Sequence record: OQ708376.1
Direction: 5' to 3' (one strand)
DNA: 64,000 nucleotides
The notes beneath the pieces were generated by a model, which did not search any database, had not been told where the DNA came from, and saw only the letters and a list, made by a program, of their open reading frames with translations. Shown here one piece after another: positions 6,544-60,560 of this stretch. The first letter of the stretch is position 1; the number at the start of each line of letters is the position of its first letter. The position numbers and the translations under genes are program-made.

Positions 6544-6564
6544 CAATTAAAGTACTGAATCACT

Positions 6565-7355: not shown

Positions 7356-7446
7356 AAATATTATCACAGTACTATTGACATAGTTTGATAGTACTGGCAT
7401 AATAGATTTTATCAAGACGACACATATTAATTTAAGGAATACTAAA

Positions 7447-7770: not shown

Positions 7771-7850
7771 TTAGCTTTACTTTATGCAGATACTTTGATA
7801 TAGTGTCTGCATAGGGGAAAGAAATTAAATCAACTTAAGAGGAAAGTAAA

Positions 7851-8120: not shown

Positions 8121-8171
8121 TCAAAACATCGTTAGCGGTCGATTTAGGCCGCTTATATTGGGGATTATACC

Positions 8172-8444
8172 ATGAACGTTAATCAAGTACTGAATGAGAT
8201 CGAAAGCATCATTAAACCGATGAAGCGTACTGATGCTATGTTAACACCGGAAGAATGCCGCCTTTATGAGCGTTACAGCGTCGAACAAGTCCAGGCAATG
8301 GCTATGGCTACCCCAGCCGTTTCACCGCCTGAGAATGCGTTACAGGACGTTACAGGGGATTATATCATTAATCCAGTACTAGGGAAGATGACTGCAATCA
8401 CCGAAGATCAAAAAGACTACTTAAGCCAGTACTTAAAAGGTTAA
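8172..8444 (+). CDS. hypothetical protein
   Basis: ORF track. Confidence 0.7.
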   Translation: MNVNQVLNEIESIIKPMKRTDAMLTPEECRLYERYSVEQVQAMAMATPAVSPPENALQDVTGDYIINPVLGKMTAITEDQKDYLSQYLKG

Positions 8445-8449
8445 TTAAT

Positions 8450-8659
8450 ATGCTTACTGTACAGGATAAGATCGACATCTTAAAGGTTAATATGTATGTG
8501 ATTGATGCCGTACCTGGTAAAGTATTTGCATACGATGATAGTACTGTAAGCGATTTCTACTATAGCCAGGACGTGGGGGATCTTTCTGTACAGTCGGTTA
8601 TTGAAAACGTAGTTAATGCAGCGTATGAGCATTTACTTTCAAATAGTACTTGCAATTAG
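8450..8659 (+). CDS. hypothetical protein
   Basis: ORF track, operonic spacing. Confidence 0.7.
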   Translation: MLTVQDKIDILKVNMYVIDAVPGKVFAYDDSTVSDFYYSQDVGDLSVQSVIENVVNAAYEHLLSNSTCN

Positions 8660-8727
8660 TTTTTAAACGCGTATAATGTTTTACATGAAGGGGAGAAATG
8701 ATTCTCCCCAATAACAGGAGAAACAAA

Positions 8728-8880
8728 ATGAAACAATACAACGCTCGGTTTGATGTTACTATCGGTAACGGCAAAGGTCAATTCTCTTTCAGTACTCGCC
8801 GCAGTTATACAGAAAACTTCCTGCGTAATTGTGCACTGACCGCCGCTCAAATTAAACACTATTTTCAGGCTAAAAAATGA
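8728..8880 (+). CDS. hypothetical early protein (50 aa)
   Basis: cassette and AGGAG RBS. Confidence 0.7.
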   Translation: MKQYNARFDVTIGNGKGQFSFSTRRSYTENFLRNCALTAAQIKHYFQAKK

Positions 8881-9154
8881 AATCATTAGCTTATTACAGT
8901 TCGGCCCTGGTCGGTGCATTGATCGCGGCATTGTTAGTAACCTATCTATTCTTTATGGTGATTTAAATGAATCCAACAGGTTTAAACTATAAAAGTTGTT
9001 CTGCATTTACGAAAGCAAATAAAGCGAATGCACGTAAAGCGAAAGTACAGGAATACATCAAGCAAGGCATGACGCGAAAAGCGGCGATTATAAAAGCTAA
9101 AAATAAATGAAAAAAGTGGTTGACTTCGGTCAGCCATTTTGTTATTATATATTC

Positions 9155-9200
9155 ATTGAGAGATAGCTCACTAGCCCACAGGGTGCAGGAGTGTATCTAT
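9155..9200 (+). ncRNA. candidate small RNA S7
   Basis: TTGACT-17-TATTAT, then AGCCCACAGGGTGCAGGAGTGTATCTA. Confidence 0.45.
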
Positions 9201-9320
9201 TGTATGAGTATTGAGTACTGAAAACTATTTTTAAAAAGTACTTGCAAACTATCTCAATAAGCGTATAATGTTTTACATCGAAAGGGGAAACGGTTTCCCC
9301 TGGTAATAAGGAAACAAATC

Positions 9321-9662
9321 ATGACTATCTCAATTGCTCAATCTAACTTTGAAAATGAAATCATCGCCCAGGCACTGCGTTTAAATGATGGTCGGGCCGA
9401 AATTAATTACGGTTTCAATTCAGGCGGTTGCGAAAAATATCAGTACTTTGTAACGGCTGATGGCGGTGTCCTGGGTATCAATACAGTTATTGTAAACATC
9501 CAAAAAATTAATTTCAATGATCCAGACGATAGCCAGTTTTACATCACTGGCGTAGACGTGAACTATGAGGATGACTCACTAACTGATGATCACACTGGCG
9601 AGCGGTTAGAAAGTGCATACGGTGAAGATGATTATCAGTCCGGTCCAGAAGATTTCGAATAA
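9321..9662 (+). CDS. acidic conserved phage protein
   Basis: GG..YF.TADGGVL...VNYED..L.DDHTGERLESAYGE pattern; D/E-rich tail. Confidence 0.8.
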   Translation: MTISIAQSNFENEIIAQALRLNDGRAEINYGFNSGGCEKYQYFVTADGGVLGINTVIVNIQKINFNDPDDSQFYITGVDVNYEDDSLTDDHTGERLESAYGEDDYQSGPEDFE

Positions 9663-9758
9663 TATAAAAAAATAGTTTGACAATAGATTATAGTACTGTA
9701 TAATAGTTTACATCAAGGGGAGAAAAACTTCTCCCCACTAACAGAGAGAGAAAACAAA

Positions 9759-9971
9759 ATGGCTAATATCCGGTCGAAATTAAAAAATGCAAAACAAGTT
9801 TTATTTTCAGATCATGAATACTTTAATAAAGATATTACAGGAGTTACAAGTATCAAGGAAGTAAAAGAAAAAACCGGCGTTTTGTGTGATGTGCGATTAG
9901 TTGGAACATTTGGGAATAACGTGCTATATCGCTGCGGTGATTACAATTTTACACTGACTATCATTAACTAA
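9759..9971 (+). CDS. hypothetical early protein
   Basis: cassette. Confidence 0.75.
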   Translation: MANIRSKLKNAKQVLFSDHEYFNKDITGVTSIKEVKEKTGVLCDVRLVGTFGNNVLYRCGDYNFTLTIIN

Positions 9972-10053
9972 AAATATTATCACAGTACTATTGACATAGT
10001 TTGATAGTACTGACATAATAACTTTTATCAACTACACTATTAAGGAATTAAAA

Positions 10054-10233
10054 ATGGCTATCATCGCAAAAACTGAAATCGTTGGTCTGGATTCTATCAT
10101 CATGACGTTTGAAGATCAAAAAGGTATGTATGTAGTTTCATATGGTGATTATGTTCGGGAGTATGAAACGGTAGACGAAGCCTTTGAAAGTTACATTCGC
10201 CAGGTGAATAAAGCATACGACGATTACCGCTAA
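10054..10233 (+). CDS. hypothetical early protein (59 aa)
   Basis: below track cutoff; promoter 9991 and AAGGA RBS. Confidence 0.7.
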   Translation: MAIIAKTEIVGLDSIIMTFEDQKGMYVVSYGDYVREYETVDEAFESYIRQVNKAYDDYR

Positions 10234-10332
10234 AATATATTACCAGTACTATTAAAGATATTGACAACGTTTGATAGTACTGTATAATAAGTTTTATCAA
10301 CAGTAGTTAACTTAACCTAAGAGAGAAATAAA

Positions 10333-10476
10333 ATGATCGCACTGGATTCATTCATCGACGCAGTACTGGCAAAAACTGGCGAGGATCTGACCGCAGAACA
10401 ATACGCAATGATCGAGCAATGCCAGCAAGACGGTAAATCGGTGAAAGATACTGTTAAGATTATCCGCAAGATGTAA
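10333..10476 (+). CDS. hypothetical early protein (47 aa)
   Basis: promoter 10261, RBS, followed by terminator. Confidence 0.65.
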   Translation: MIALDSFIDAVLAKTGEDLTAEQYAMIEQCQQDGKSVKDTVKIIRKM

Positions 10477-10482
10477 GATTAT

Positions 10483-10510
10483 AGCCCACTGGTTAACGCT
10501 GGTGGGCTTT
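10483..10510 (+). terminator. intrinsic terminator containing a Chi site
   Basis: AGCCCAC..GTGGGCT-TT. Confidence 0.6.
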
Positions 10511-10581
10511 AATTCATTACCCTATACAATGCCAGTACTAAACCGTTTATCTCGTTAGAATGCGTTACAGGACGTTTAACA

Positions 10582-10779
10582 ATGATTAGCATGAAATCAG
10601 TACAAAAACAAATAGAAACATTATCAAAAATTAAACGTAAACAGTACTCCTTAGAATATACAATCAATGGTAACTATCATCTAATGAAAGAGAATAATTT
10701 TATAGTCATTGATGAATCATTGCAAATCATTAGTATAGTACTGAAAGCATTAATCAATGACAGAAAAAAATTAAAATAA
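10582..10779 (+). CDS. hypothetical protein
   Basis: ORF track. Confidence 0.55.
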   Translation: MISMKSVQKQIETLSKIKRKQYSLEYTINGNYHLMKENNFIVIDESLQIISIVLKALINDRKKLK

Positions 10780-10818
10780 ACTATTGACAATATCATCAAG
10801 TACTGGCATAATACTTAC

Positions 10819-10866
10819 ATCAAGACGAGAACGTCACTAACCCATAGGGTGCACAAATGTAACTGT
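10819..10866 (+). ncRNA. candidate small RNA S8
   Basis: TTGACA-17-CATAAT, GACG-AGAA-CGTC hairpin, AACCCATAGGGTGCACAAATGTA. Confidence 0.45.
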
Positions 10867-11110
10867 ATAATATTGATCAAAAAATGATCTGATCAATACT
10901 TGATCAATTTGCGTAAAGTAGTATAATTCTATGCAGTTGGTTAGACGAAAGGTTATGATTAGTAGTGCAAGTGTATAAAAATTTTCATGGTGTATCGTTT
11001 CGCACATATGGGGATGAATATGTGGTATCATGTGGATTGGAAAAAGTAAGAACAAGTAATATTATTGTCGCATTACAGTACTATAGTATTTTTATAATGA
11101 GGTTAAAATA

Positions 11111-11368
11111 ATGGCTGTAGGATTCGCGAAAGATGGGGCCGAACAAGACGAGATTAACGCAGTGATTCAGGCCGCCGTTAACCACGCTAGAAAGCAAATT
11201 AACGCACAAATAGAATCACTGATACATTGCCTCGACTGCGGCGATATAATCCCTGAGAATCGACGCCAGGCCGTTAAGGGATGTAAGTACTGCATAACTT
11301 GCCAGGAGGATCATGATAGTACTTTTAAACGTCCCCCGCGTAATTGTTGGCATAGATCTATGAGATAA
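11111..11368 (+). CDS. TraR/DksA C4-type zinc-finger protein
   Basis: MAVGFAKDGAEQD N-terminus; CLDC-x17-CITC; IPENRR. Confidence 0.92.
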   Translation: MAVGFAKDGAEQDEINAVIQAAVNHARKQINAQIESLIHCLDCGDIIPENRRQAVKGCKYCITCQEDHDSTFKRPPRNCWHRSMR

Positions 11369-11431
11369 AAAGTATTGACAGTACTGAAAGATAGTGTATA
11401 ATGTTTTATATCTTAACTGAGGATAGAAATC

Positions 11432-11788
11432 ATGGGAATACAACATATCACGCGTACTACTGACAATGGCGAGATCACTGGTTATCAAGTACAGGGCAAA
11501 GTAGCACAATTGCAGTACTGGTTTGTTAAACGTGGAATCATTGCACCGGATCTTGATTATGACCGTGTAGCGTTTATTGATTCTCTTTATGTTGATCCTG
11601 ATAGTCGGGGCAATGGTGAAGGTAACGAATTAATGAATGCCTTTATTGATGCCGCCGATGATTCAGATTGTATCATTTTAGAATGCGATACGGGAGAAGA
11701 TAACGCCTTTAATCTTAAAGAATGGTACGAAGGTTTCGGATTCGAGGTACTGATCGATAGTGAATATCCTATCATGATTTTATCATAG
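11432..11788 (+). CDS. GNAT family N-acetyltransferase
   Basis: motif A LYVDPDSRGNGEGNELM; motif B LKEWYEGFGF. Confidence 0.85.
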   Translation: MGIQHITRTTDNGEITGYQVQGKVAQLQYWFVKRGIIAPDLDYDRVAFIDSLYVDPDSRGNGEGNELMNAFIDAADDSDCIILECDTGEDNAFNLKEWYEGFGFEVLIDSEYPIMILS

Positions 11789-11860
11789 TACTTGCATTTA
11801 GTTTTCAGTAGTGTTATAGTACTTACATCAAGGGGAAACATCTTCCCCTACTAAGAGGAA

Positions 11861-12055
11861 ATGAAAATGGAAAACTTATCAAGTATTTTAGTACAAGATG
11901 ATTTCGGTAATCCTGGAAGTGCTATCATTGTTCGGGGTAATAAAGCAACATTTGTTATTGCTGGTGGACCTGTACAGCGTAGCATTAAAAACAATGCCGT
12001 TACTATTAATAATGTACGCTATCGCTTAGATAAAGAATTGATTCATAAACTGTAA
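11861..12055 (+). CDS. hypothetical early protein
   Basis: cassette. Confidence 0.7.
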   Translation: MKMENLSSILVQDDFGNPGSAIIVRGNKATFVIAGGPVQRSIKNNAVTINNVRYRLDKELIHKL

Positions 12056-12082
12056 TATTAATTTAATAGAGGATAACAATAA

Positions 12083-12406
12083 ATGTACATTCATACTACT
12101 ATCACAAAGGAAGTCCGTTGCCAGTTCGAAAGTATTCCGGGCGTATGTTTCATCACTGGTACGTTTTCCCCTGGTGATCGTGATAATCCAGTACTGTTAC
12201 AATTACGCCATCCATCATGGGATAAAGCATTTGATCTACCGTTGAATGAATTCGCAACTACTGCTGAAAAGTACATTAAAAATATTCGCGAGAATGATCG
12301 ACTATTCATTAATGCTTTTAGTGATTCCGCGTTAAGCGAGATCCACGGTGTATTGGTTGCAATCATGGAATCAATGGAGAAAACTAAATTCAAACAAGGT
12401 GAATAA
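12083..12406 (+). CDS. hypothetical protein
   Basis: GAGGA RBS. Confidence 0.75.
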   Translation: MYIHTTITKEVRCQFESIPGVCFITGTFSPGDRDNPVLLQLRHPSWDKAFDLPLNEFATTAEKYIKNIRENDRLFINAFSDSALSEIHGVLVAIMESMEKTKFKQGE

Positions 12407-12489
12407 AAACTATTGACAAGATAATCTAGTACTGTATAATAAGTTACATGAAGGGGAGAAATGATTCTCCCCACTGAGAGGAAAGAAAA

Positions 12490-12702
12490 ATGCAAGGTCA
12501 ACTAATCGTTCGTAAATGGTCTGATACTAACGCTAAACCGTGGGATGTACAATACATCGGACCGGATGGGGTATCACGTTATCAGCCTGGCGTAACGCAT
12601 AGTACTGAGCAATATGCCGCCGCTCACCGCGAACGCCTGTTAGAATCCATGAAACAGGGATACGGTGAAAAATTCATTCAAGATCATTGGCTGAAAGATT
12701 AA
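12490..12702 (+). CDS. hypothetical early protein
   Basis: cassette. Confidence 0.75.
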   Translation: MQGQLIVRKWSDTNAKPWDVQYIGPDGVSRYQPGVTHSTEQYAAAHRERLLESMKQGYGEKFIQDHWLKD

Positions 12703-12719
12703 TATAAGGAGTACAGCTT

Positions 12720-13127
12720 ATGCAAATGAATCCGATGATTATTGTTTTAGCTGTACTTATGATCATTCATGCAATAGTAGAAGTATTAACGCAATCAGGA
12801 GTAATAAAATGATTCAAGTAGAATTATCAGTACTGAAAGATCTGTTTTATCGGTTAGGTACTACTGGCGAGTATCCTAAAAGTGATACCGCAAAACTTTT
12901 TGTATCACTCGACTTATGGCAACGCGAACAATTAGTAATGTCCTGGCGTAAAGGTAAAGCAGATAGCGAGGTGAAAGCATGAAAGAATTCTTATTCGAAG
13001 TAGTGTTTCAAGGTGTCGGTAGTAACCAACTGATTCGCTCAAGTGGTTACAATGTTAACCAGGCATGGAATAACATTAAACAAATGTACCCGAACGCTAT
13101 CACCTATCGCAACCCGAAACAAGTTTA
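12720..13127 (+). CDS. three tiny coupled ORFs (~30, ~57, ~49 aa; first hydrophobic)
   Basis: AAGGAG/AGGAG/GAGG RBSs with ATGA overlaps; below track cutoff. Confidence 0.5.
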
Positions 13128-13181
13128 AAAATAATTGAAAAAGGGATTGACTCCGGTCAGTCCCTTTGCTATTATATACGC

Positions 13182-13223
13182 ATAGAAACAAATCAGCCCA
13201 CAGGGTGCATAAATGTATCTATT
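13182..13223 (+). ncRNA. candidate small RNA S9
   Basis: TTGACT-17-TATTAT, then AGCCCACAGGGTGCATAAATGTATCTA. Confidence 0.45.
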
Positions 13224-13301
13224 GTTTGCTGGTGGCTAGTACTGAAAACTATTTTTAAAAAAGTACTTGCATTGTACTTAGAATCAAGTATAATGTTTTA
13301 C

Positions 13302-13374
13302 ATCAGGACGGGGAACGAAACAAGTAACCCCGTTAAGTAGTCCAGGAGTAAGACATAAGAAAACCTCCCCTGAT
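13302..13374 (+). ncRNA. candidate multi-stem RNA J3
   Basis: near copy of J1 with stems preserved. Confidence 0.45.
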
Positions 13375-13443
13375 AAAATAGTTTGACAATAGAAAGTAAA
13401 CGAGTATAATACTTACATCAACCACTGATAAGGAAACATTAAA

Positions 13444-13719
13444 ATGCGGATTCTACTGACAGCTAACGAAATCGAACAAGTACTGACTACTAACCTGGAA
13501 GACTGGAAACGTGAAGCAGATATCCAGGCGGTTCAACGGCTTAACGATGAGTTAACGCCGGATGACTTAAGCAAGATTGTAGATCCTCAATTCTACGAAG
13601 ATATCCACGACACCGCGTTAAGCGTCGAGGATGTACTAGATAAGCACTACATTGATATTGATTTGCAGGTTTACGGTCGTAAAAACTTTATCACTATTCA
13701 CGACATTTACAATAATTAA
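13444..13719 (+). CDS. acidic hypothetical protein
   Basis: promoter and AAGGA RBS; D/E-rich. Confidence 0.75.
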   Translation: MRILLTANEIEQVLTTNLEDWKREADIQAVQRLNDELTPDDLSKIVDPQFYEDIHDTALSVEDVLDKHYIDIDLQVYGRKNFITIHDIYNN

Positions 13720-13805
13720 GTATTGACAAAGTATCTTAGTACTGTATAATAGTTTACATCGAGAGGGGGAATGGTTCCCCTCCTAACAAAGAGAGAGAAA
13801 TAAAA

Positions 13806-13988
13806 ATGGCTAAATGCACTATCTGTAAGAAAGAAATCGTATTAGTTCCAAGTGCCCGTGAACGTGCCGCTCGGTTCGGTGGCAAAGCGTCAGACTATAC
13901 AAAAATGTTTACTACCCATGCAGCTTGCCAGGTAGCAAAACGTTCACAAGAAAGCGTAGAATTAATGCGTAAACTTTCCAAAAAATAA
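13806..13988 (+). CDS. small putative Zn-binding protein
   Basis: CxxC ... HxxC. Confidence 0.75.
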   Translation: MAKCTICKKEIVLVPSARERAARFGGKASDYTKMFTTHAACQVAKRSQESVELMRKLSKK

Positions 13989-14077
13989 GTATTGACAAAG
14001 TATCTTAGTACTGTATAATAGTTTACATCAAGCGAGGGGAATGGTTCCCCTCCTAACTAAAAGAGAGAGAAATAAAA

Positions 14078-14401
14078 ATGGCTATGATCCTTACCCAGAA
14101 AGTAGAACTGAAAATTGTAACCTCCTTTGACATTAAAGTTAATCGCTGGACTGATCGGAACGGTAACACTTACCACTCTTGCTACGTGTCCGCGTTAATT
14201 GGCGACCGCTGGGAAGACTTGGGACATGAAACCTTTACTTACGGTTACGGTACACAAGGAGAATACACGGGCTTGGAGATCATTAAAGAAACCGTTATAG
14301 GTTTCAACCCGAAAGAAAAAGTTATTCACCGCATCGAAAAAGAGATTAACAAAGAAATAACAGTTCGCTACTACGATGTAAAACGTAAGAAAGACATGTA
14401 A
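14078..14401 (+). CDS. early protein, paralogue of 7447..7770
   Basis: RWTDRNGNTYHSC, FTYGY, DVKRKKD. Confidence 0.8.
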   Translation: MAMILTQKVELKIVTSFDIKVNRWTDRNGNTYHSCYVSALIGDRWEDLGHETFTYGYGTQGEYTGLEIIKETVIGFNPKEKVIHRIEKEINKEITVRYYDVKRKKDM

Positions 14402-14496
14402 TAGAATCCATTTAAAGTACTATTTGACATTGCCCAGATAGTACTTTATAATAGACTCTAACTTGTAGTACTAACTCAACTAATAGGATGTATACC

Positions 14497-14892
14497 ATGA
14501 TTACTAAATTCTACGCTACCCGTGAAGCTGCCCGTATTGTTGCACGCGAGGAAGGAGCAGCATTTAAAGACATGGGCAAAGATGCACCGAAAGGTCAACG
14601 CTGGGCCGTACAGTTCAAAGAAATCTCTGATATCGTGAATTCACCGGAGCCAGTACTAACAGCAGCAGAACTAAAACGAGCGGATTTACTGGCGGCAGTA
14701 CTTAACGCACAAGATGAATTTATCGCTGATTCTGATATCAAAGTACAGACAAACCATACCGCTTGGACTCACGCGGATCACCTGGCAAACCTTAAGCGTC
14801 CAAGTGAACTGGTTCGCAACCAGAAAGAGATCCGACACGACCGTAAGGGTAATCGTGTAACAGTATACAGTAAACGCCGCCAGGTTATCTAA
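14497..14892 (+). CDS. early protein, paralogue of 2520..2786
   Basis: ATREAARIVAR, FKDMG, DRKGNRVTVY. Confidence 0.8.
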   Translation: MITKFYATREAARIVAREEGAAFKDMGKDAPKGQRWAVQFKEISDIVNSPEPVLTAAELKRADLLAAVLNAQDEFIADSDIKVQTNHTAWTHADHLANLKRPSELVRNQKEIRHDRKGNRVTVYSKRRQVI

Positions 14893-14914
14893 TAACTTGC
14901 AGTACTAACAACAC

Positions 14915-14939
14915 GGCGGGATCAGTTCCCGCCTTTTTT
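14915..14939 (+). terminator. intrinsic terminator
   Basis: GGCGGGA/TCCCGCC and T tract. Confidence 0.85.
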
Positions 14940-14954
14940 ATAGGATAAACTAAA

Positions 14955-15209
14955 ATGATTAAGGTACAACTATCTAAAGATAATATCTTGCGGGTACACT
15001 ATAAAGCACCACAGAGAATCATCACAAAGGCCGTACAGCTTGCTAATGAGTTTATTAATGGTAACCTATTACCAAGGAAGTTAAGCAACGGAAAACTGCG
15101 TGTAATCGATGTAGACACTAACAACAGAATAGTAATTGAGAACACAGGAAAGATAAACCTATATGAACACCAACAATATAATAAGAAAATAAAACTAATA
15201 TCACGTTGA
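14955..15209 (+). CDS. basic hypothetical protein
   Basis: AGGA RBS. Confidence 0.7.
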   Translation: MIKVQLSKDNILRVHYKAPQRIITKAVQLANEFINGNLLPRKLSNGKLRVIDVDTNNRIVIENTGKINLYEHQQYNKKIKLISR

Positions 15210-15262
15210 CAGTACTCAATTGTTTTAGTACTATGTACATATACCAACACGGGAGAAACAAA

Positions 15263-15481
15263 ATGAAATTATCTAAAATCGAAAAGAAAACTATTGATGA
15301 AGCAGTTAAGCACGGTTATACCTTTCGTAATGATTCACATTTTACCAATTTTCAACAAGGGTATCGTACTATTAAAAAACTCATTGACAAAGGTTTATTA
15401 GTTGAAGTCAATAACGGCAATGGTATTGAGTATCAACCAACACAAGACGCATTTTATTTTAAGAAATATAATATTATCTAA
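15263..15481 (+). CDS. possible winged-helix protein
   Basis: TIKKLIDKGLLVEV...YQPT pattern. Confidence 0.55.
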   Translation: MKLSKIEKKTIDEAVKHGYTFRNDSHFTNFQQGYRTIKKLIDKGLLVEVNNGNGIEYQPTQDAFYFKKYNII

Positions 15482-15539
15482 TTGACAGTACTCAAATGTT
15501 TTAGTACTATATGTACATACCAACACGGGGAAAAACAAA

Positions 15540-15782
15540 ATGATTACTTTAGAAAAACGTATCAAAGAAACTACATCGCTGGTGGAACTGTTAACAGTAC
15601 TGAAATGCCGTACTACTCGGTTTAGTACACCGGACTTTATTAATATGGTTGATGTTAATGGTCGCTATCGTATCACGGTCGAACAAGGAGCGGCGAAAGT
15701 ATTCAGTACTAAAAACACTAAGGAAGTGATTCACGCTGTAAGTGTTAAAAAAGTAGTTGCCATTGATAGTAAAGTACTGTAA
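15540..15782 (+). CDS. hypothetical protein
   Basis: promoter nearly identical to that of 15263. Confidence 0.7.
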   Translation: MITLEKRIKETTSLVELLTVLKCRTTRFSTPDFINMVDVNGRYRITVEQGAAKVFSTKNTKEVIHAVSVKKVVAIDSKVL

Positions 15783-15813
15783 GATAGTTTCATTAACTCA
15801 AGGAGAACATGCA

Positions 15814-16398
15814 ATGCGTAATTATACTAAATTCATCCGTACCCTGTCAGAAATGGAAACCAACAAAGAGATCCTTTCAGCTTGTCGGTTAGCTGGTCTG
15901 GAGATCATCGGTGCGGGTTCTTCCCGTATTGTATTCGCTTTAAATGATCGGTTAGTGATTAAGGTCGCGAATTGTGATGCGGGTGTAGAACAAAATGAAA
16001 CTGAATGTAAGGTATGGAATTTTTTAGATTATGACCGCCCTCAATTGAAACAGTACTTTGCAAAGGTGCATATGCATTTATGCGATCCTGATAATATGTT
16101 TATCGTTATGGATCGGTTGAGTACTGCAAGTAAAGGCAGTGTAAAGCACGTAAACGCGTGCAATGAATTAAAGTACAATATTAAACGTAATGCCATTGAA
16201 CGCCAGCACCGCTTTGCTGATGCACTACAACACGTTGATGATACATTATCAACACTAACGATAAGAGATATCAGAAAACAGAATATCGGCCAGGATCGTA
16301 ATGGCCTTATTAAAGTACTTGATTACGGTTTAACCCGCAATATCTGGAATCAGTACTATAAAAAGCGTGATGTAGAAGCAAGTAAGGTAACACGATAA
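15814..16398 (+). CDS. minimal Ser/Thr protein kinase-fold protein
   Basis: GAGSSRIVF, VIK, helix-C Glu (NETE), RDIRKQN, LDYG. Confidence 0.85.
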   Translation: MRNYTKFIRTLSEMETNKEILSACRLAGLEIIGAGSSRIVFALNDRLVIKVANCDAGVEQNETECKVWNFLDYDRPQLKQYFAKVHMHLCDPDNMFIVMDRLSTASKGSVKHVNACNELKYNIKRNAIERQHRFADALQHVDDTLSTLTIRDIRKQNIGQDRNGLIKVLDYGLTRNIWNQYYKKRDVEASKVTR

Positions 16399-16451
16399 AA
16401 AAGATTAAAAAAGGGATTGACTCCGGTCAGTCCCTTTGCTATTATATATTC

Positions 16452-16498
16452 ATTGAGAGATAACTCACTGACCCATAGGGTGCGGAAGTGTATCTATT
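16452..16498 (+). ncRNA. candidate small RNA S10
   Basis: TTGACT-17-TATTAT, then ACCCATAGGGTGCGGAAGTGTATCTA. Confidence 0.45.
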
Positions 16499-16619
16499 AT
16501 ATAAGTATTCAGTACTGAAAACTATTTTTAAAAAAGTACTTGCATTGTACTTAGAATCAAGTATAATGTTTTACATAGAGAGGGGGAAATGGTTCTCCCT
16601 GGTAATAAGGAATAAAATC

Positions 16620-16841
16620 ATGACTACAATGACTTGCATTTACGCTTCCAATCTTCTGAATGATGCGGCCTTTAATGTTGATTCAGAATATCAATGTTAT
16701 CGGGATGAAAATAAAAAAGTTTTTGTAGTTGATAATAATGGTTTCCATATTGAATTACAATCCGGTTTCACTGGTGTTGATGGTAAATCAGTGTGGGGCG
16801 TACAGGATGATAAAGGCACATATCATTTTAAACGTAATTAA
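16620..16841 (+). CDS. hypothetical early protein
   Basis: cassette. Confidence 0.75.
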   Translation: MTTMTCIYASNLLNDAAFNVDSEYQCYRDENKKVFVVDNNGFHIELQSGFTGVDGKSVWGVQDDKGTYHFKRN

Positions 16842-16925
16842 GTATTGACAAAGTATATCAGTACTGTATAATAGTTTACATCAAGGGGAGAATAGTTCTC
16901 CCCGATACTAAAAGGAAACAAAATT

Positions 16926-17198
16926 ATGTCCAGCTACTCCGCTACTATGATCATTAAAGATATGAACGGTAATCCTACTTCTGCTGGTGGATCATTTGGA
17001 AACATTAATTTAGATGGTCGGTTATCCATGCAATCAGCCATCGATGCAGCGAAAGAAGTTTTTAAGAATGAATGTACTGTTAGTAAGATGGATTATATGG
17101 GATTCGCTATCGAGAAAACTAATCGTTTTGTGAACTACAAAAATCCACTGATGATTGATACTAACCTGAAAGCTAACGAAGTGGGGTACTTATTATGA
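16926..17198 (+). CDS. hypothetical early protein
   Basis: cassette. Confidence 0.75.
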   Translation: MSSYSATMIIKDMNGNPTSAGGSFGNINLDGRLSMQSAIDAAKEVFKNECTVSKMDYMGFAIEKTNRFVNYKNPLMIDTNLKANEVGYLL

Positions 17199-17386
17199 CA
17201 GTAGAAGAAGTTAAAAAAGTACTGGCAGTACTACGCTATCATAATCATTGCAAGGTGAAGAATGATCCTGATTATGTTGATTCATCCCTGGAGGAAGACA
17301 CATTAAACGCAATAAGCCATATGCAAACATTAGCAAAGCGTATGACCGAAAAGAATAGACCGGACTATATCGGAAATAAAATTTAA
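17195..17386 (+). CDS. hypothetical protein
   Basis: ATGA overlap. Confidence 0.7.
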   Translation: MTVEEVKKVLAVLRYHNHCKVKNDPDYVDSSLEEDTLNAISHMQTLAKRMTEKNRPDYIGNKI

Positions 17387-17472
17387 AAAGTACTTGCATT
17401 GTAGTTAGATTAACGTATAATGTTTTACATAGAGCGGGGGAATAGTTCTCCCGCCAGTCCAGGAGATACACC

Positions 17473-17736
17473 ATGAACACTATCGAAATCACTATCAATG
17501 CACACGTATACGACAACGTAGTACTGCAAACTACTATGACCGCTAATGATACCAGTACTTTGCGGAATACCGTTGTAAGTGCTGTATGTGCTGCAATCGG
17601 TGATGTAGCCCTGGAAAATGCAGAACACATCAACAACGGTTTCACTATGTGCAAACGTGATAACGCAAAACATATCATCTTAGAAGGTTACGGCGGTGTA
17701 GAATATAATCTTTATATGAAAAAAGTACTTGCATAA
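17473..17736 (+). CDS. hypothetical early protein
   Basis: cassette. Confidence 0.75.
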   Translation: MNTIEITINAHVYDNVVLQTTMTANDTSTLRNTVVSAVCAAIGDVALENAEHINNGFTMCKRDNAKHIILEGYGGVEYNLYMKKVLA

Positions 17737-17803
17737 TAACTAAAACAAAGTATAATGTTTTGCATAGGGGGAGATATCCTCCCCCACTAAAAGGAGTAAT
17801 AAA

Positions 17804-18028
17804 ATGGCTAACTTTGATGAACTGATGCGGGAAGTAGCTAACCTGGCAGAAGAGAAGAAATCATTCGATTCTATCTATAACACCGCTCACCGTGATTCAG
17901 TACTGGCATGTACTCAGGATCAAAAAGATGAACTAATCGCCACCTATCATGAAGCATGGAAGTACTACCGACAATGGGAGAAAGAAGAAAGTGAGTCTAC
18001 CATTGACGGCCTCAATAATCTAATCTAA
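17804..18028 (+). CDS. acidic helical early protein
   Basis: cassette. Confidence 0.75.
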   Translation: MANFDELMREVANLAEEKKSFDSIYNTAHRDSVLACTQDQKDELIATYHEAWKYYRQWEKEESESTIDGLNNLI

Positions 18029-18104
18029 AAGTTTTATTTCAGTACTATTGACATAGCTTGATAGTACTGATGTAATAACTTTACTAACTACAAGGGGAAA
18101 CATA

Positions 18105-18362
18105 ATGGAACAGTTCACACAATATCGGGTAAATCCTCAAGCTATGGCCTACGTAGAAGACCATAAAACATTACCAGTACTGCAACCAGTTAAAGGCCAT
18201 ATCTATCGTGCTATGTCGTGGAGTACTGCACAGGATGGATATAAAACCGTTGCCGTGGGTATGTATTGCGGGAATGGTGAATGGTTTGATCCAAATAATC
18301 CGGTAGCCATTGACAGTACTGAAAAAATGAAATGGGCCGACTACATCGAAGATATTTCATAA
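18105..18362 (+). CDS. hypothetical protein
   Basis: promoter and RBS. Confidence 0.75.
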   Translation: MEQFTQYRVNPQAMAYVEDHKTLPVLQPVKGHIYRAMSWSTAQDGYKTVAVGMYCGNGEWFDPNNPVAIDSTEKMKWADYIEDIS

Positions 18363-18451
18363 AACTATTTGACAGTACTAACCAGTAATGTATAATGTTT
18401 TACATAGAGCGGGGGAATAGTTCTCCCGTCAATAGTTTGGAGTAAAACATT

Positions 18452-18652
18452 ATGTCTATCGCTATCGCCCTGGTTGAAGTACTGAAAGAAGCTAAAGCCA
18501 ACCTTATCGATGTACAGATTAAGGAATTACAAAATGGTTTAATCGGCTGTACTTGTACCGCTGGTGGAGCGGCAGACTATCGGGAATTCGAATCACTTGA
18601 ATCGATGGTCCGTTATCTTACCATGATCGTAGAAGATTGGAGAATCATCTAA
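18452..18652 (+). CDS. hypothetical early protein
   Basis: cassette. Confidence 0.75.
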   Translation: MSIAIALVEVLKEAKANLIDVQIKELQNGLIGCTCTAGGAADYREFESLESMVRYLTMIVEDWRII

Positions 18653-18709
18653 CAAAAAAGAATAAAAAAAGGGATTGACTCCGGTCAGTCCCTTTGCTAT
18701 TATATACTC

Positions 18710-18750
18710 ATAGACAAAAACTAGCCCACTGGGTGCAGGAGTGTATCTAA
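18710..18750 (+). ncRNA. candidate small RNA S11
   Basis: TTGACT-17-TATTAT, then AGCCCACTGGGTGCAGGAGTGTATCTA. Confidence 0.45.
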
Positions 18751-18898
18751 AATATATAGTTAATAACGGTGAGTAACTATCTGCTGGTGGGGTGAAAACT
18801 ATTAATAAAAAAAGTATTGACAAAGTATATCAGTACTGCAATAATGTATCTCGTAGGGCGGCAATGGTGCGACGGCCCACAAAGTTAGGAGATTCAAA

Positions 18899-19722: not shown

Positions 19723-19790
19723 GCGTTACACATCACCAAACATCATAGGCCGCCTTGTAGCGGCCTTAACTATATCAGGAGGGCATACAT

Positions 19791-20000
19791 ATGTTCTATA
19801 CAGTATACAGCGTTCTAGGTACTATTGCAGGCGTACATGATAACGTCAATGATGCTATGCGTACAGTACTGCAACAGGTTCCACTAAAGCCTAAGACCAT
19901 TAAGCAGATGACAGCACGACTAACCAGGGCGACCGATGGCGTGGAAGTATGGCAGGACTACGGGGATACACAGATAATCGTTAGCGTAACGAAGGATTAA
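19791..20000 (+). CDS. hypothetical protein
   Basis: AGGAGG RBS. Confidence 0.7.
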   Translation: MFYTVYSVLGTIAGVHDNVNDAMRTVLQQVPLKPKTIKQMTARLTRATDGVEVWQDYGDTQIIVSVTKD

Positions 20001-20028
20001 TGCGTAAAGGGATCTAGTACTGATTCAG

Positions 20029-20094
20029 AAAAAAGTCAAGGCGTTTTTAAAATTATGCGTTAAAAAAATGCATAGGTAATCCCTTGACTTTTTT
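20029..20094. repeat. perfect 13-bp inverted repeat at region boundary
   Basis: AAAAAAGTCAAGG (20029-41) / CCTTGACTTTTTT (20082-94). Confidence 0.8.
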
Positions 20095-20249
20095 GAAATA
20101 AAAGGGATTGGACTATGGCAAAATGCGTAGGGGGCTAAAGGGCGGGTAACCTTAGCGACTTCGATAAAGGGGTATTACGAATAAAATGTTATTGACTTTT
20201 TATACAATTCATATATTATATGATTGATATTATTTTCAAGGGAGTCCCT

Positions 20250-57056: not shown

Positions 57057-57362
57057 ATGGAAGACAATGGAATGAAATTTGATATGTTTGAAGGTGTACC
57101 AGAGTTCGATTTCAACAAACTTGAAGAAGGTGAGGAATCAGAACTAGTTAGTGTTACACTTAAAGCAGATTCTAAAAAGAAATATTCATCATCAGTACGT
57201 TCACGTTCACAAGAAGAATACGAATCATTTATTGAAAGTATTCATTATGAAACATTCCATCACGCAGATGGAACTCCATATGAAGTACGTGTAACAGTAC
57301 TGAAGCCTGAAGTAAATCCAATGGAAAATCTACGTCCTGTTTACTGCTGGGCAAGTCACTAA
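57057..57362 (+). CDS. acidic hypothetical protein
   Basis: AAGGA RBS; followed by terminator. Confidence 0.75.
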   Translation: MEDNGMKFDMFEGVPEFDFNKLEEGEESELVSVTLKADSKKKYSSSVRSRSQEEYESFIESIHYETFHHADGTPYEVRVTVLKPEVNPMENLRPVYCWASH

Positions 57363-57367
57363 TAAAC

Positions 57368-57401
57368 CAAAGGACGGGATTTGTTATCTCGTCCTTTTTT
57401 T
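57368..57401 (+). terminator. intrinsic terminator
   Basis: AAAGGACGGGAT..ATCTCGTCCTTT and T tract. Confidence 0.8.
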
Positions 57402-57413
57402 GTCTGGAGATGT

Positions 57414-58268
57414 ATGAAACTTTATCTAATCGTTGACTACAATAAGGATTATGCTGGTAACTTCACCGAAGATTCGGATGGATATTGCACATCGACTAAT
57501 GTCAATGTACGTATCAGTAATGCTCATGAACATGAATCTTGTAAAAATCTAAAAGATTTTATCACATACCGAGCATTTGAAAAGAACTTCTGCCGCAGTA
57601 GATATTCGAAGTTTGAGTACCCGTTAATTGATGTTCCTGATGATTTAATGTTCCAGTTAATGCTAACTGGAGTTCAAGATTATGATTACATAGCATATAA
57701 TCATATTACTAAGAAAATTTATATTGGTACATCATCACATGACACTTCTATGTATGCATCATGCCCAGATGATCGAATGAATGATAGAAAATCATACTAT
57801 AGTGGATCAGTTGGTTTAAATGATTCATTAAATGAAAATTTATTCTTTGAGTATGTTTATGATTACCATCATGAGAAAAAAGAACGTGAAGATTACTGTA
57901 TAGCAATTGATAGTACTAATGGGTATGAAGACGTGAAAGAAGCACTTATGCCGTACATTATTGAAAAGTACTACAAAGATTTTCAGTACTGTAGTAATTT
58001 TCTAATCAGAAATTCTATTATAATCGGTCGCCAATCTAGTGCATACTCTCAGTACTATAATGATTCACCAGTAGCATCGGCAAATGAAATGTGTGATATT
58101 TTACAAATTCCACGTGAAGATATGGCATTCATTTTTACATCTTTTATTGAAGATGATGAGTTGTATATTAAAAATAAACACCGTTTCATGCCAAGCAAGA
58201 TTGAGGTTATTCGAAGTTTTAGTGTTGATATACTAACAAATTTCACAGAAAAAACCGAATATAACTGA
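57414..58268 (+). CDS. hypothetical protein with FQ-like motif
   Basis: VPDDLMFQLML; GGAG RBS. Confidence 0.75.
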   Translation: MKLYLIVDYNKDYAGNFTEDSDGYCTSTNVNVRISNAHEHESCKNLKDFITYRAFEKNFCRSRYSKFEYPLIDVPDDLMFQLMLTGVQDYDYIAYNHITKKIYIGTSSHDTSMYASCPDDRMNDRKSYYSGSVGLNDSLNENLFFEYVYDYHHEKKEREDYCIAIDSTNGYEDVKEALMPYIIEKYYKDFQYCSNFLIRNSIIIGRQSSAYSQYYNDSPVASANEMCDILQIPREDMAFIFTSFIEDDELYIKNKHRFMPSKIEVIRSFSVDILTNFTEKTEYN

Positions 58269-58296
58269 GACAAATGATAAGTTAATGATATAATAT

Positions 58297-58845
58297 AAGG
58301 TGACAACATAATATGTTAGTCACCTTTTTTTAATCCTGAAAGGTTCCCATAAGGAAATGATTAAAAGCCTAATCCACTCGAAAATGTAGAGGGTAGATGA
58401 GTAGTCCTTTCAGTACGAACAGCAGATGAAACCCGTTAGATGATGGCATAGTTTGAACCACTCACGGCAATGCGGCTGTATAAAGAACTCCAATAGGATA
58501 AAGAGAGTTCCTCGATAGACATATAAGGATCGCACCTTACCAATTATCTAAGGGAGATTTCATAAGAAATATGCGGTCGGAATTATACAATATAGTTGCG
58601 TCCAAATTTTGTGAAATCAAATACAAGTACTGGTCATATGGTATTTGTATTATGTGTCGGGATGTTTAAGACCGACGACCGTTGCTACAAGAACCGCGAT
58701 AGAGAGAAACAGAGCAACCCGCTTTCGTCTCGTAAGAGAATTCGTGATATGAACTATGTGAAGGCCACCAGCGTCAAACTTTTTTGTTCTTTCCCCTGCG
58801 GGGGGATGAAATATGCTCAAGCAAACCCCGTCAATATTAATTAAA
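58297..58845 (+). ncRNA. candidate large structured non-coding RNA
   Basis: ~550-nt intergenic stretch with many helices (see finding); TGnTATAAT at 58286-94. Confidence 0.45.
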
Positions 58846-58871
58846 AGAAAATAGTACTTGTAGAATTAGAC

Positions 58872-59492
58872 ATGCGTAGCATGATAATTCTACTGATGTT
58901 GATGCAATCAACGTCACGTATATTCATTGATGTTTCCATAGGAATAATGATGGCATTTATTAGAAAAGAAAAAACTGTTACTTATAAAACTTTGAATTTT
59001 GATGATTGCATTAATCAATCACAAGACGAAGATATCTTTACTGGATATGTGGTTATTAAAGAAAAAGGATGCATTTCTTATATAAAGGAATTGCAAAATG
59101 GAATTGAAGTAACTTCAGTTAAATTACTTCCTACTCAAAAACCAACAATATCAAAAGCCCAGTATGGTAATTATTTTGAAGAAAGATATAGTAATAATTC
59201 AATAAGTGTTAAGGCTCATATTATTAAAGGAGAACTAGAAGGAGAATATAGAAAATACAACCCACAAGGAAAATGTGTTTGGGTTAAATACTTCAATTCA
59301 GGATATGATGTAACATCTGAAATTATAGAGTTCTTAGGTTTAAAATGTACCCCTGAGACTATTCACGATTACAAGTTCAATACTGAAGAAGAGTTTAATC
59401 TGATGATGCGTTACGGTTCACATTTTAAATTTTTATATGAATATAACATTGACAGTAGTACTTTTGATAAGATAGTACACAACTGTCTCTAA
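58872..59492 (+). CDS. MORN-variant repeat protein (start uncertain)
   Basis: IIKGELEGEYRKYNPQGKCVWVKYFNSG; C-terminal NTEEEFNL. Confidence 0.65.
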   Translation: MRSMIILLMLMQSTSRIFIDVSIGIMMAFIRKEKTVTYKTLNFDDCINQSQDEDIFTGYVVIKEKGCISYIKELQNGIEVTSVKLLPTQKPTISKAQYGNYFEERYSNNSISVKAHIIKGELEGEYRKYNPQGKCVWVKYFNSGYDVTSEIIEFLGLKCTPETIHDYKFNTEEEFNLMMRYGSHFKFLYEYNIDSSTFDKIVHNCL

Positions 59493-59508
59493 CAAAAGGA
59501 ATTATATA

Positions 59509-60030
59509 ATGTCGAAGAAGGATGCTTCGAAAAAACATTCAGTACATTTTAGTACTGGAAAAGATAACTGGACAACTCCAAAGGATTTCTTTGAAGATTT
59601 GGATGAACTCTGGGAATTTACACTAGATGCAGCATGTGTCAAAGAAACTGCATTGTGTGATAATTTTTTCACTCCAGAAGATGATTCACTGTCACAGGAT
59701 TGGGGAAATAATATAGTTTGGTTGAATCCACCATATAGTGACTTGAAAACTTGGTTATCCAAAGCAGTAGATGCATATAATAACGGGGCAACTGTAGTTA
59801 TTCTTGTACCCTCAAGAACCGATACAATTGCTTTTCAGGATTATGCTGCTAAAATATGTGATTGTATTTGTTTTATTAAGGGAAGATTGAGATTTGGTAT
59901 ACCAGAAGAACCCGATAAGAAAACAGATTCAGCACCATTTCCTTCGTGTCTGATAGTACTGGATAAGTACTTAACCACTGCTAAAATCAATTATCTTAAA
60001 TCTCTTGGGTTGGTGATGAAGAATTTATGA
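59509..60030 (+). CDS. dam: phage DNA N6-adenine methyltransferase (Dam family, T1/HP1 type)
   Basis: WTTP..FF, FTLDAAC, WLNPPYS, LVPSRTDT, FIKGRLRF. Confidence 0.92.
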   Translation: MSKKDASKKHSVHFSTGKDNWTTPKDFFEDLDELWEFTLDAACVKETALCDNFFTPEDDSLSQDWGNNIVWLNPPYSDLKTWLSKAVDAYNNGATVVILVPSRTDTIAFQDYAAKICDCICFIKGRLRFGIPEEPDKKTDSAPFPSCLIVLDKYLTTAKINYLKSLGLVMKNL

Positions 60031-60560
60031 AAGAAACATGCGTATTAACTTTTGGACGTGTTAATCCCGTACATCGTGGACATGGTTTAGTTTTTGAAAA
60101 GGCCAAAACATTACAAGAACAGTACAATGCTGATTTAAAAATATATCTAAGCACCAGTACTGACAATATAAAAAACCCACTCCCACCTGAACTAAAAATG
60201 TATTATACAGAGGGATTCTATCCTTCAGTGCAAGAGAACATCTACACAGAAGACAATCTATTTGATATAATGAGAGAACTGGATGGAAAGTACTTAGATG
60301 TTCTTTTCATATGTGGTTCTGACCGTATTGATTCTTTTCAAAAAACTCTTGACATGTACAATGGTAAGTTGTATAATTTTTGTAGTATAAAAGCAATTCA
60401 AGCAGGTATTGACCGTAATGTAAGTCAATATAGCTCAACACAAATGCGTAACTTCGCAAAAAATGAAGATTTTGATAGTTTTCGTGAGTTTTTACCTGGA
60501 AATGACGAGGACTTAAAAATACAATTATTTGAAGACGTTATAAAATACATGAGGAAATAA
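60027..60560 (+). CDS. HIGH-superfamily nucleotidyltransferase (cytidyltransferase-like)
   Basis: TFGRVNPVHRGH, KNPL, GSDR, SSTQMR. Confidence 0.85.
   Translation: MKETCVLTFGRVNPVHRGHGLVFEKAKTLQEQYNADLKIYLSTSTDNIKNPLPPELKMYYTEGFYPSVQENIYTEDNLFDIMRELDGKYLDVLFICGSDRIDSFQKTLDMYNGKLYNFCSIKAIQAGIDRNVSQYSSTQMRNFAKNEDFDSFREFLPGNDEDLKIQLFEDVIKYMRK

Follow-up and report, generated by a model that had tools for sequence, protein, structure and literature searches.

At positions 58269-58949 of the Escherichia phage vB_EcoM_CRJP21, a 681-nt gap separates two annotated genes, gp_148 (57414-58268) on its left and gp_149 (58950-59492) on its right. The window, that is the whole 64,000-nt stretch of DNA that was analysed, was identified by megablast as bases 1-64000 of OQ708376.1, the record of a jumbo myovirus with a 366-kb genome that belongs to Asteriusvirus (121Q/PBECO4 group). 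The gap is without annotation in CRJP21, 121Q, G17, GAP32, CBB and BF, and it is richer in GC than its surroundings (0.38-0.425 across 58300-58900, compared with 0.275-0.335 in the flanks on either side), as an initial annotation made from the sequence had noticed when it proposed a large structured non-coding RNA here. Past 20 kb the window contains no stretch of at least 350 nt that lacks ORFs of 70 aa or more; the gap itself is missing from such a list because two unconserved ORFs, 58055-58309 on the minus strand and 58596-58844 on the plus strand, overlie most of it. The comparisons described below suggest that the gap holds an independent structured non-coding RNA gene of ~0.5 kb, represented by four diverged paralogues in this phage and belonging to a clade-restricted family, whose product would act in trans as a folded particle (with a probability of roughly 0.8).

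Conservation is concentrated in the intergenic stretch. Within Asteriusvirus it is 95-99.8% identical, against 88-99% for the entire 2.3-kb stretch including the flanking genes (95.2% versus 88.3% in WPEC5, 98.9% versus 93.3% in PBECO4 and 95.5% versus 89.5% in ph0011). In other genera, sensitive blastn still recovered a match of 66-75% identity to approximately 58365-58856, namely in Cronobacter GAP32, Pectobacterium CBB, Serratia BF, Yersinia fHe-Yen9-03/04, Salmonella 7t3/Munch and Klebsiella Kae01 phages, and likewise in Erwinia and Xanthomonas phages, and the matched DNA is almost always unannotated. The element was found in 62 of 50,697 phage records at 4-5 places per record (216-275 places altogether), and a second, divergent query returned 62 records again, with identical genus counts. 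CRJP21 holds four copies (c1 to c4, c1 being the one in the gap), all on the plus strand and ~70-74% identical to each other, a count that covers the genome except ~2.4 kb at 164001-166399. Motif scans of IMG/VR and metagenomes revealed further copies in uncultured jumbo-phage contigs and in wastewater; a looser motif tried for the collection scan, AGAAANNGNNNNACCCGCTT, gave mostly chance matches and was rejected. A 19-mer scan across bacteria and archaea (185,579 genomes, one per species) yielded 61 chance matches, none of which fits the family HMM, so that no cellular or prophage home was found by this pattern scan, a method unable to exclude one. The family thus appears to be confined to one clade of jumbo phages, comprising Asteriusvirus, Mimasvirus and Eneladusvirus. 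For the comparative work, 55 full-length copies were gathered by nhmmer and reduced to 32 representatives of less than 97% identity, which were aligned.

This alignment bears directly on the possibility that the gap simply contains small protein-coding genes, which is suggested by the existence of an ORF of 82 aa on the plus strand and another of 56 aa on the minus strand (Table 1). The stretch homologous to the longer ORF carries 2-12 in-frame stops in all 31 other representatives, and the length shifts between copies are mostly non-multiples of three and hence break the frame, while the strand and position of the longest open frame differ from copy to copy. A conserved protein encoded by this ORF had been named in the initial annotation as an observation that would speak against an RNA, and none is seen. 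PHANOTATE-type gene calling covers the element with 3-5 tiny ORFs, which in SHEFM2K and 7t3 lie on the minus strand; in Kaldavass three tiny ORFs lie over it, one of them on the plus strand, and Yen9-03 has one small plus-strand ORF. The element therefore contains no conserved ORF, since no frame is kept, and a coding explanation is scarcely credible. Recognition of the family corrects a systematic annotation error, in which spurious small ORFs are placed by gene callers.

Table 1. Features of the c1 locus and positions of the four copies in CRJP21 (numbering of OQ708376.1; canonical shares and covarying pairs refer to the 32 aligned copies)
Feature	Position	Strand	Basis or remarks
-35-like hexamer GAGACA	58267..58272	+	16-nt spacer to TATAAT; 10/12 match plus TG
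Extended -10 TGATATAAT	58286..58294	+	TGnTATAAT type
Hairpin AAGGTGAC/GTCACCTT and U-run	58297..58331	+	8-bp stem, 14-nt loop, T7; stem itself 58297-58326
Conserved RNA core, ~507 nt	58336..58842	+	nhmmer and blastn homology, covariation
Domain 1 (P1 enclosing P2 and P3)	58336..58413	+	32-copy comparison
P1 (GAAAGG/CCTTTC)	58336-43/58406-13	+	91% canonical; 7/8 pairs with double changes; slid controls 18-47%
P2 hairpin	58344-47/58353-56	+	differs by replacement of entire hairpin; seen in alignment, uncounted
P3	58374-79/58389-93	+	weaker, 68% canonical
P4	58419-23/58475-79	+	100% canonical; 3 covarying pairs
P5	58433-36/58464-67	+	100% canonical; 0 covarying pairs
P6 hairpin (GAACTC/GAGTTC)	58485-90/58505-10	+	95% canonical; 6/6 covary; up to 4 pair types per position
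Invariant strand CGATAGACATATAAGG	in 58511..58555	+	32-copy invariant columns
P7	58524-27/58536-39	+	100% canonical; 2 covarying pairs
TAAGGGA, invariant	58548-58554	+	32-copy invariant columns
P8 domain	58556..58618	+	
P8	58556-60/58614-18	+	90% canonical; 5/5 pairs covary
Inner stem AATT/AATT within P8	58581-84/58605-08	+	displays conserved 19-nt loop module 58585-58603
ORF, 82 codons, TTG start	58596..58844	+	not a gene
P9, 13-bp hairpin	58620-32/58639-51	+	89% canonical; 11/13 pairs covary
P9 loop with junction strand just 3' of P12	58633-58639 with 58747..58753	+	7-bp long-range pairing
ORF, 56 aa	58650-58820	-	
P10 hairpin (GTCGG/CCGAC)	58655-59/58673-77 (span 58654..58679)	+	94% canonical; 4 covarying pairs
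Multi-helix junction P11-P14	58681..58746	+	98-100% canonical, 2-4 covarying pairs each
P11 (GTTGCT/AGCAAC)	58681-85/58714-18	+	100% canonical; 3 covarying pairs
P12	58695-99/58742-46	+	99% canonical; 4 covarying pairs
P13	58702-06/58722-26	+	100% canonical; 2 covarying pairs
P14 (TCTC-GTAA-GAGA)	58728-31/58736-39	+	98% canonical over 58729-31/58736-38; 3 covarying pairs
Chi site GCTGGTGG	58765..58772	-	within RNA core
3' block: U-rich tract, GC hairpin, invariant tail CAAAxCxCGTCA	58790..58842	+	
3' GC hairpin (TCCCC/GGGGA)	58791-95/58801-05	+	97% canonical
Copy c1	58336-58842	+	
Copy c2	113265-113792	+	
Copy c3	304155-304606	+	
Copy c4	193700-194196	+	

Compensatory changes among the 32 copies support a folded RNA. 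RNAalifold on the raw MAFFT alignment mis-paired the variable hairpins, and the variable segments were re-justified and all column pairs scored. On the 32-copy alignment RNAalifold gives 67 pairs, 39 of which show compensatory double changes, with a covariation term of -11.3 kcal/mol; the alignment of homologues for covariation that the initial annotation had proposed thus comes out in favour of an RNA. The variety of pair types can be considerable, as in one P6 pair (GC in 14 copies, UA in 7, CG in 6 and AU in 4) and one P12 pair (CG in 14, UA in 10 and AU in 8). When the 3' partner of each helix is shifted by 1-2 columns as a control, the canonical share falls to 18-60%, compared with ~90-100% for the true helices. 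The predicted fold comprises at least 15 helices together with a 7-bp loop-junction pairing, kept by compensatory changes. All eight helices picked out in the initial annotation are present in the sequence and have comparative support, seven of them within the core as P1, P6, P9, P10, P11, P14 and the 3' hairpin, and the eighth, AAGGTGAC/GTCACCTT, among the orthologues of c1. The reading of P14 as closed by a GNRA tetraloop holds for the helix, which is kept, and fails for its GTAA loop, which is not conserved among copies. For P11, RNAalifold favours an alternative (58681-83/58692-94), and P11 was chosen on covariation grounds. Changes in the 3' GC hairpin are limited to C-G becoming U-G, and its slid controls are high owing to the runs of G and C.

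Several parts of the fold vary by exchange of whole modules. In the P4/P5 domain (58419..58479) the internal loops are invariant and the apex is swappable, occurring in two unrelated types, one short (GGCATAGTTTGTACC) and one long. The 19-nt loop module displayed within P8 is missing in some copies, is partly swapped for a GC mini-hairpin in 7t3 and L151, and occurs a second time inside P14 of c2-type copies. A long-range contact joins the P9 loop to the junction strand, for which 99.6% of combinations across the 32 copies are canonical, 6 of the 7 pairs show double changes, slid controls reach 21-42% and at least 8 sequence versions exist; it would form either a 7-bp pseudoknot or a bridge between molecules. 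A further candidate pairing, 58514-18/58765-69 (GATAG/CTATC), is 91% canonical with both sides invariant and two mismatches in c1, and is regarded as unproven. Approximately 100 columns are invariant across the 32 copies and these cluster, unpaired, in internal loops and junctions, in blocks that include AGCAnAnGAAACC, CACGGCAAT, GATAGACATAT, TAAGGGA, GACCGT, GAGAAAC, ACCCGCTT and CGTCA. A Shine-Dalgarno role for TAAGGGA was considered and rejected, there being no conserved start codon downstream.

The plus strand is taken as the folded strand because a number of positions are predominantly G-U on it, where the opposite strand would have A-C. The comparison of folding energy with shuffled controls, which the initial annotation had listed among the tests that could count against an RNA, came out weak: the minimum free energy of 58336-58842 is no better than that of shuffles (z = -1.06; -0.41 for the minus strand). 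However, this z-score is uninformative for an A/U-rich RNA and is overridden by the covariation. The element has the properties of a large ornate non-coding RNA, in the descriptive sense given to that class by the Breaker and Weinberg labs, namely a length of more than 400 nt, covarying helices, unpaired conserved blocks, a long-range pairing and no coding potential.

Strand-specific pairing also weighs on the proposal that the element is a repeated site functioning as DNA, for example an origin of replication, a site for recombination or packaging, or a mobile element in decay. The 4-5 repeats per genome, the labelling of part of one copy as a repeat_region in the UE-S1 record and signs of recombination between paralogues are in line with such a site, as is the Chi site within c1. 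Chi sites number 12 in the window against 0.37 expected, 11 of them at 578-18790, and the one in c1 is, as the initial annotation had remarked, the only one outside that early region. However, homologous copies read CTATCATC or CCATCAGC at this position, so the Chi is peculiar to the CRJP21 copy and is probably incidental. Moreover, compensatory changes keep the helices with G-U pairs on one strand, private promoters in the same orientation accompany the copies (31/32), and the loci are syntenic across genera and hence not mobile, all of which makes a DNA-level site very improbable.

A maximum-likelihood tree of the 32 copies contains paralogue groups common to Mimasvirus, Eneladusvirus and uncultured genomes, and the duplications are therefore old. 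The tree is mosaic: the four Asteriusvirus copies group together although c1 is syntenic with the c1 of GAP32, and the syntenic copy of CBB falls with another paralogue type. Such a pattern suggests that paralogues have exchanged sequence or undergone gene conversion.

Upstream of c1, GAGACA and TGATATAAT together form the top sigma-70-like promoter match within 57300-59600, with the -35 and -10 hexamers, the 16-18 nt spacing and the TG extension of a sigma-70-dependent promoter, and transcription would be expected to start at ~58299-58302. The extended -10 pointed out in the initial annotation recurs in the family, as the alignment of the 130 nt upstream of P1 in all 32 non-redundant copies shows TGnTATAAT or a near match (e.g. 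TATACT) in 31 of them, across all genera and all paralogue types, and in essentially all 32 the -10 is preceded at a distance of 16-18 nt by a -35-like TGAAACA, GAGACA, GGGACA or GGAACA. In the XaC1 copy no promoter-like site was seen within the upstream 130 nt. For c2, c3, c4 and their relatives the order is the terminator of the upstream gene, then the promoter, and then the RNA 7-30 nt further on.

Copies of the c1 type have an additional hairpin with a U-run between promoter and core. It has the stable stem followed by a U-run of an intrinsic terminator, carries an ARNold annotation in G17 and GAP32 as terminator of the gene preceding it, and was missed by a simple terminator scan because of its 14-nt loop. 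The order of promoter, U-run hairpin and core is kept in every c1-type orthologue (GAP32, BF, CBB, Yen9-03, 7t3 and uncultured viral genomes, UViGs), where the hairpin starts at the expected transcription start site, and its stem shows compensatory changes (AAGGTGAC in CRJP21, AGGACAG or AGGACGG in others, and a stem of 11 bp in 7t3). The initial annotation had counted this helix as the first of the structured RNA; it is indeed present and covaries among orthologues, but it appears to be a terminator-like 5' hairpin lying outside the conserved core. The hairpin is predicted to serve both as the intrinsic terminator of gp_148 and as the 5'-terminal hairpin of transcripts initiated at the promoter, for which it may be either an attenuator or a protective stem-loop.

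At the other end, conservation stops at ~58842, and a scan at c1 found no plus-strand terminator between 58842 and 59600, so that c1 might double as a long leader for gp_149. Copies of the c2 and c4 types have a terminator-like hairpin inserted directly ahead of the last conserved hairpin and the CGTCA tail, which implies that this block may be outside the mature RNA there; the final conserved block may represent read-through RNA or act differently.

The layout of c1 raises the question of whether the element works in cis, as a leader or attenuator of the downstream operon (gp_149, Dam methylase and cytidylyltransferase), for example one that is riboswitch-like or responds to a protein. A promoter that is always followed by a U-run hairpin in the syntenic copy is the classic arrangement of an attenuator, no plus-strand terminator was detected between the element and gp_149, and the association with the methylase operon persists from genus to genus: GAP32, CBB, BF, XbC2, Kaldavass and 7t3 each have their best-matching copy in synteny with c1, and there a phrog_15199 gene precedes the RNA copy and phrog_16210, Dam methylase and cytidylyltransferase genes follow. 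However, the other paralogues are found in unrelated company. The neighbours of c2 are DUF7325/phrog_35272 and then a Dps-like gene; c3 comes directly after a gene for an RpoD-like sigma factor, precedes small ORFs and an HNH gene, and has a separate promoter-like site downstream; and c4 is flanked by an endonuclease VII gene and a baseplate-hub gene, each encoded on the other strand. This is not the placement of a cis-regulatory leader or riboswitch, as the genes downstream of the four copies are unrelated. In particular, c4 cannot be a leader because it is convergent with its neighbours and has its own promoter and an internal plus-strand hairpin with a U-run. The internal terminator-like hairpin of c2- and c4-type copies, and a size of 500 nt with 15 helices that is far beyond that of known leaders, also weigh against a leader, which is accordingly considered improbable. 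The copies are instead interpreted from their arrangement as stand-alone RNA genes, given their private sigma-70-type promoters and the convergent position of one of them, and the unrelated neighbours of the four copies argue for action in trans.

Sequencing data from wastewater are ambiguous on this point. In eight RNA-labelled runs, practically all matched 31-mers of a 2.1-kb query fall within the 525-nt element. When contigs were placed at 85% identity the flanks were covered too, and the ~2-4x higher depth over the element is strandless and inflated by paralogue-derived contigs. Such depth fits an abundant RNA and equally fits DNA carry-over combined with higher sequence conservation.

Taken together, the element is very probably a functional structured non-coding RNA gene. 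The large RNA proposed in the initial annotation can now be described as a ~500-nt family with at least 15 covariation-supported helices, a pseudoknot-type pairing, plus-strand G-U pairs and a conserved promoter (31/32). Its most likely mode of action is in trans, in the form of a folded particle that the host polymerase would produce early. Host RNA polymerase would transcribe the plus strand from ~58300 early in infection, and the c1 transcript would begin with the terminator-like hairpin, which would also stop read-through from gp_148 and may shield the 5' end of the RNA or act on it as an attenuator. The compactly folded RNA would then act in trans.

To our knowledge, few large structured RNAs of bacteria and phages are known, namely the rRNAs, RNase P, tmRNA, group I/II introns, OLE, GOLLD, ROOL, raiA and HEARO. 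The Rfam 15 covariance models, which include ROOL, GOLLD, OLE, raiA, HEARO, RNase P, tmRNA, 6S, group I/II introns and self-cleaving ribozymes, gave no match at gathering score anywhere in the window; with the threshold relaxed to E up to 10, the region returned only snoRNA/sRNA noise on the A/T-rich 5' hairpin. ARAGORN found no tRNA or tmRNA gene in the window. The lack of resemblance to tmRNA, RNase P or group I/II introns noted in the initial annotation is therefore upheld, and a full-text literature search found no description of the RNA family. In all likelihood the jumbo phages carry here a family of large structured RNA genes that had not been described before; the family itself is new, with no detectable relative, and large phage non-coding RNAs of unknown function have precedents. 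Each earlier large structured RNA opened new biochemistry.

A catalytic or self-processing RNA, whether a large ribozyme of a new kind or the RNA component of a phage ribonucleoprotein enzyme, would account for the complex pseudoknotted fold and for the ~100 invariant unpaired positions, both typical of ribozymes. However, similarity to Rfam ribozyme families is lacking even at E up to 10, no enzyme gene is conserved beside the copies, and there are neither exon-like flanks nor interrupted genes. Catalysis is thus an unlikely function, slightly more so than that of a leader, and the trans-acting particle remains the preferred reading.

Among shorter RNAs, the viral csRNAs are comparative-genomics motifs from IMG/VR phage contigs, some of which lie upstream of Dam methyltransferase genes (PMC10690425). 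The motifs of this 2023 catalogue are 30-151 nt long with a mean of 67 nt (PMC10690425), too short in comparison with an RNA of ~500 nt, and by their description they could at best be fragments of the element. A parallel with 6S RNA is that of a trans-acting RNA tied to sigma-70 transcription, since c3 adjoins the phage RpoD-like gene. However, the sigma-factor neighbourhood is true for only one of the four copies, and 6S is a ~185-nt mimic of an open promoter with one long interrupted helix, whereas the new RNA is branched and multi-domain and has no match to the Rfam 6S model. OLE RNA (RF01071, ~600 nt) is similarly ornate, with long invariant stretches, and works as a scaffold for a ribonucleoprotein. 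It is found in Bacillota as a single copy beside the genes of its partners (oapA/B/C), whereas the new RNA has no Rfam match to it and no conserved neighbouring protein gene.

The nearest analogues in architecture and habitat appear to be ROOL (RF03087) and GOLLD (RF01998), a likeness that is architectural only, though the new RNA may form oligomers in the manner of both. Like the new RNA, both are large (>500 nt), multi-domain non-coding RNAs of unknown function borne by phages or prophages, with many covarying helices, conserved unpaired nucleotides and a pairing between hairpin loop and junction detected by covariation. In ROOL (J6/8-L8) and GOLLD (L20-J13/15), this covariation-detected pairing has been identified by cryo-EM as the intermolecular bridge of an RNA-only nanocage (PMC12286853). 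The pairing of P9 loop and junction would be of the same type, which provides a lead and not a test. The new RNA differs from both in having no sequence or structure match (Rfam covariance models, E up to 10), in its occurrence in jumbo myoviruses infecting Enterobacterales instead of in Bacillota or rumen phages, in the position of its copies, which are not beside tRNA islands (no tRNA was found in the window or in 50 kb of L010), and in the presence of 4-5 diverged paralogues per genome, each with a sigma-70 promoter (31/32 copies).

Among specific mechanisms, an RNA particle that serves as a scaffold or sequesters a partner, in the manner of ROOL, GOLLD or OLE, is considered the most likely, and can be put forward only tentatively. 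Its invariant loops would make tertiary, quaternary or protein contacts, and the covarying pairing of P9 loop and junction would be an assembly contact, possibly between molecules. A still more speculative proposal is that the family represents a third kind of phage-borne ornate RNA, a self-assembling particle that is RNA-only or RNA-scaffolded, with the P9-loop/junction pairing as the intermolecular bridge. The sequence versions of this pairing in CRJP21 are UCAUAU in c1, AUCGAAU in c2, AUUGCAU in c3 and AUUGUAU in c4, and if self-assembly were true these paralogue-specific versions would decide which of the four co-expressed paralogues assemble together, while the strong early promoters would supply particles possibly capturing a host component as infection begins, for instance RNA polymerase, ribosomes or a defence sensor. 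The 4-5 diverged paralogues per genome, unusual for such RNAs, are ready material for specificity tests. Unlike most metagenome-derived RNA classes, this family occurs in culturable E. coli phages (121Q, PBECO4, CRJP21 and others), in which genetics, RNA-seq, pull-downs and cryo-EM are feasible.

Comparison of the 32 non-redundant copies of the structured RNA family gave a tree that is at odds with synteny. The four Asteriusvirus paralogues form one cluster, and the syntenic copy of CBB falls with a different paralogue type. Because the RNA tree and synteny disagree, the alignment suggests that paralogues have exchanged modules or undergone gene conversion. One loop module of 19 nt is conserved (58585-58603 in the window copy; consensus GTACAATATAGATCCGTCC). 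It frequently includes a GATC Dam site and can be carried on one or other of two RNA arms, or on both; the c2-type paralogues considered for this module are listed in the table.

In all syntenic orthologues (58297-58331 in the window; L004, L005, L006 and L332), a covarying hairpin with a U-run lies right after the promoter of the RNA, and its onset coincides with the expected transcription start as placed from the promoter. Since the hairpin directly follows the promoter, the terminator of the upstream gene (gp_148 in the window) lies between promoter and RNA core. Possible roles of this promoter-proximal hairpin are attenuation, insulation and stabilisation of the 5' end.

Immediately upstream of c3, another of the four copies in CRJP21, is a gene for an RpoD-like sigma-70 family factor (L011 36788-37753, corresponding to CRJP21 303089-304054) with the Pfam domains Sigma70_r2, r3 and r4, and an HNH endonuclease gene follows c3 after two small ORFs. 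Elsewhere in CRJP21, also outside the window, a 3.7-kb stretch without any annotated gene (344148-347887; L010 27847-31586) contains no tRNA according to ARAGORN and no copy of the RNA family. At the start of the window, 11 Chi sites (GCTGGTGG) lie within 578-18790, nine of them on the plus strand; the expectation is 0.37 over the whole window, against 11 in the first 19 kb alone. This Chi-dense region also has several long stretches poor in ORFs (table).

Coordinates and copies of listed features
Feature	Sequence	Position
ORF-poor stretch	window	1-1010
ORF-poor stretch	window	9972-10836
ORF-poor stretch	window	12703-13443
ORF-poor stretch	window	19723-20219
Small annotated ORFs over the RNA	L002	1571-2141
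Small annotated ORFs over the RNA	L332	748-1348
Small annotated ORFs over the RNA	L333	648-1306
c2-type copies considered for the 19-nt loop module	L026, L036, L027, L163, L030, L101	

Downstream of the RNA, across 58950-60560, the CRJP21 record seems to have its product names offset by one gene. The gene gp_149 is labelled 'methylase' yet belongs to phrog_16210 (function unassigned) and has no match in Pfam; in 121Q, G17, GAP32 and SHEFM2K, it is the gene after the gp_149 equivalent that encodes the Dam methyltransferase (59509-60030 in the window), and the cytidylyltransferase gene comes directly after that. Over the RNA itself, several genomes carry three to five 'hypothetical protein' ORFs of 30-56 aa (PHANOTATE-style annotation), and these are very likely spurious. 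The minus strand holds every one of them in SHEFM2K and 7t3, and two out of three in Kaldavass. Among the records examined, only that of Escherichia phage UE-S1 marks the element at all, labelling the 5' part of its c4 paralogue as 'repeat_region' (L337 278-435, corresponding to 311350-311507).
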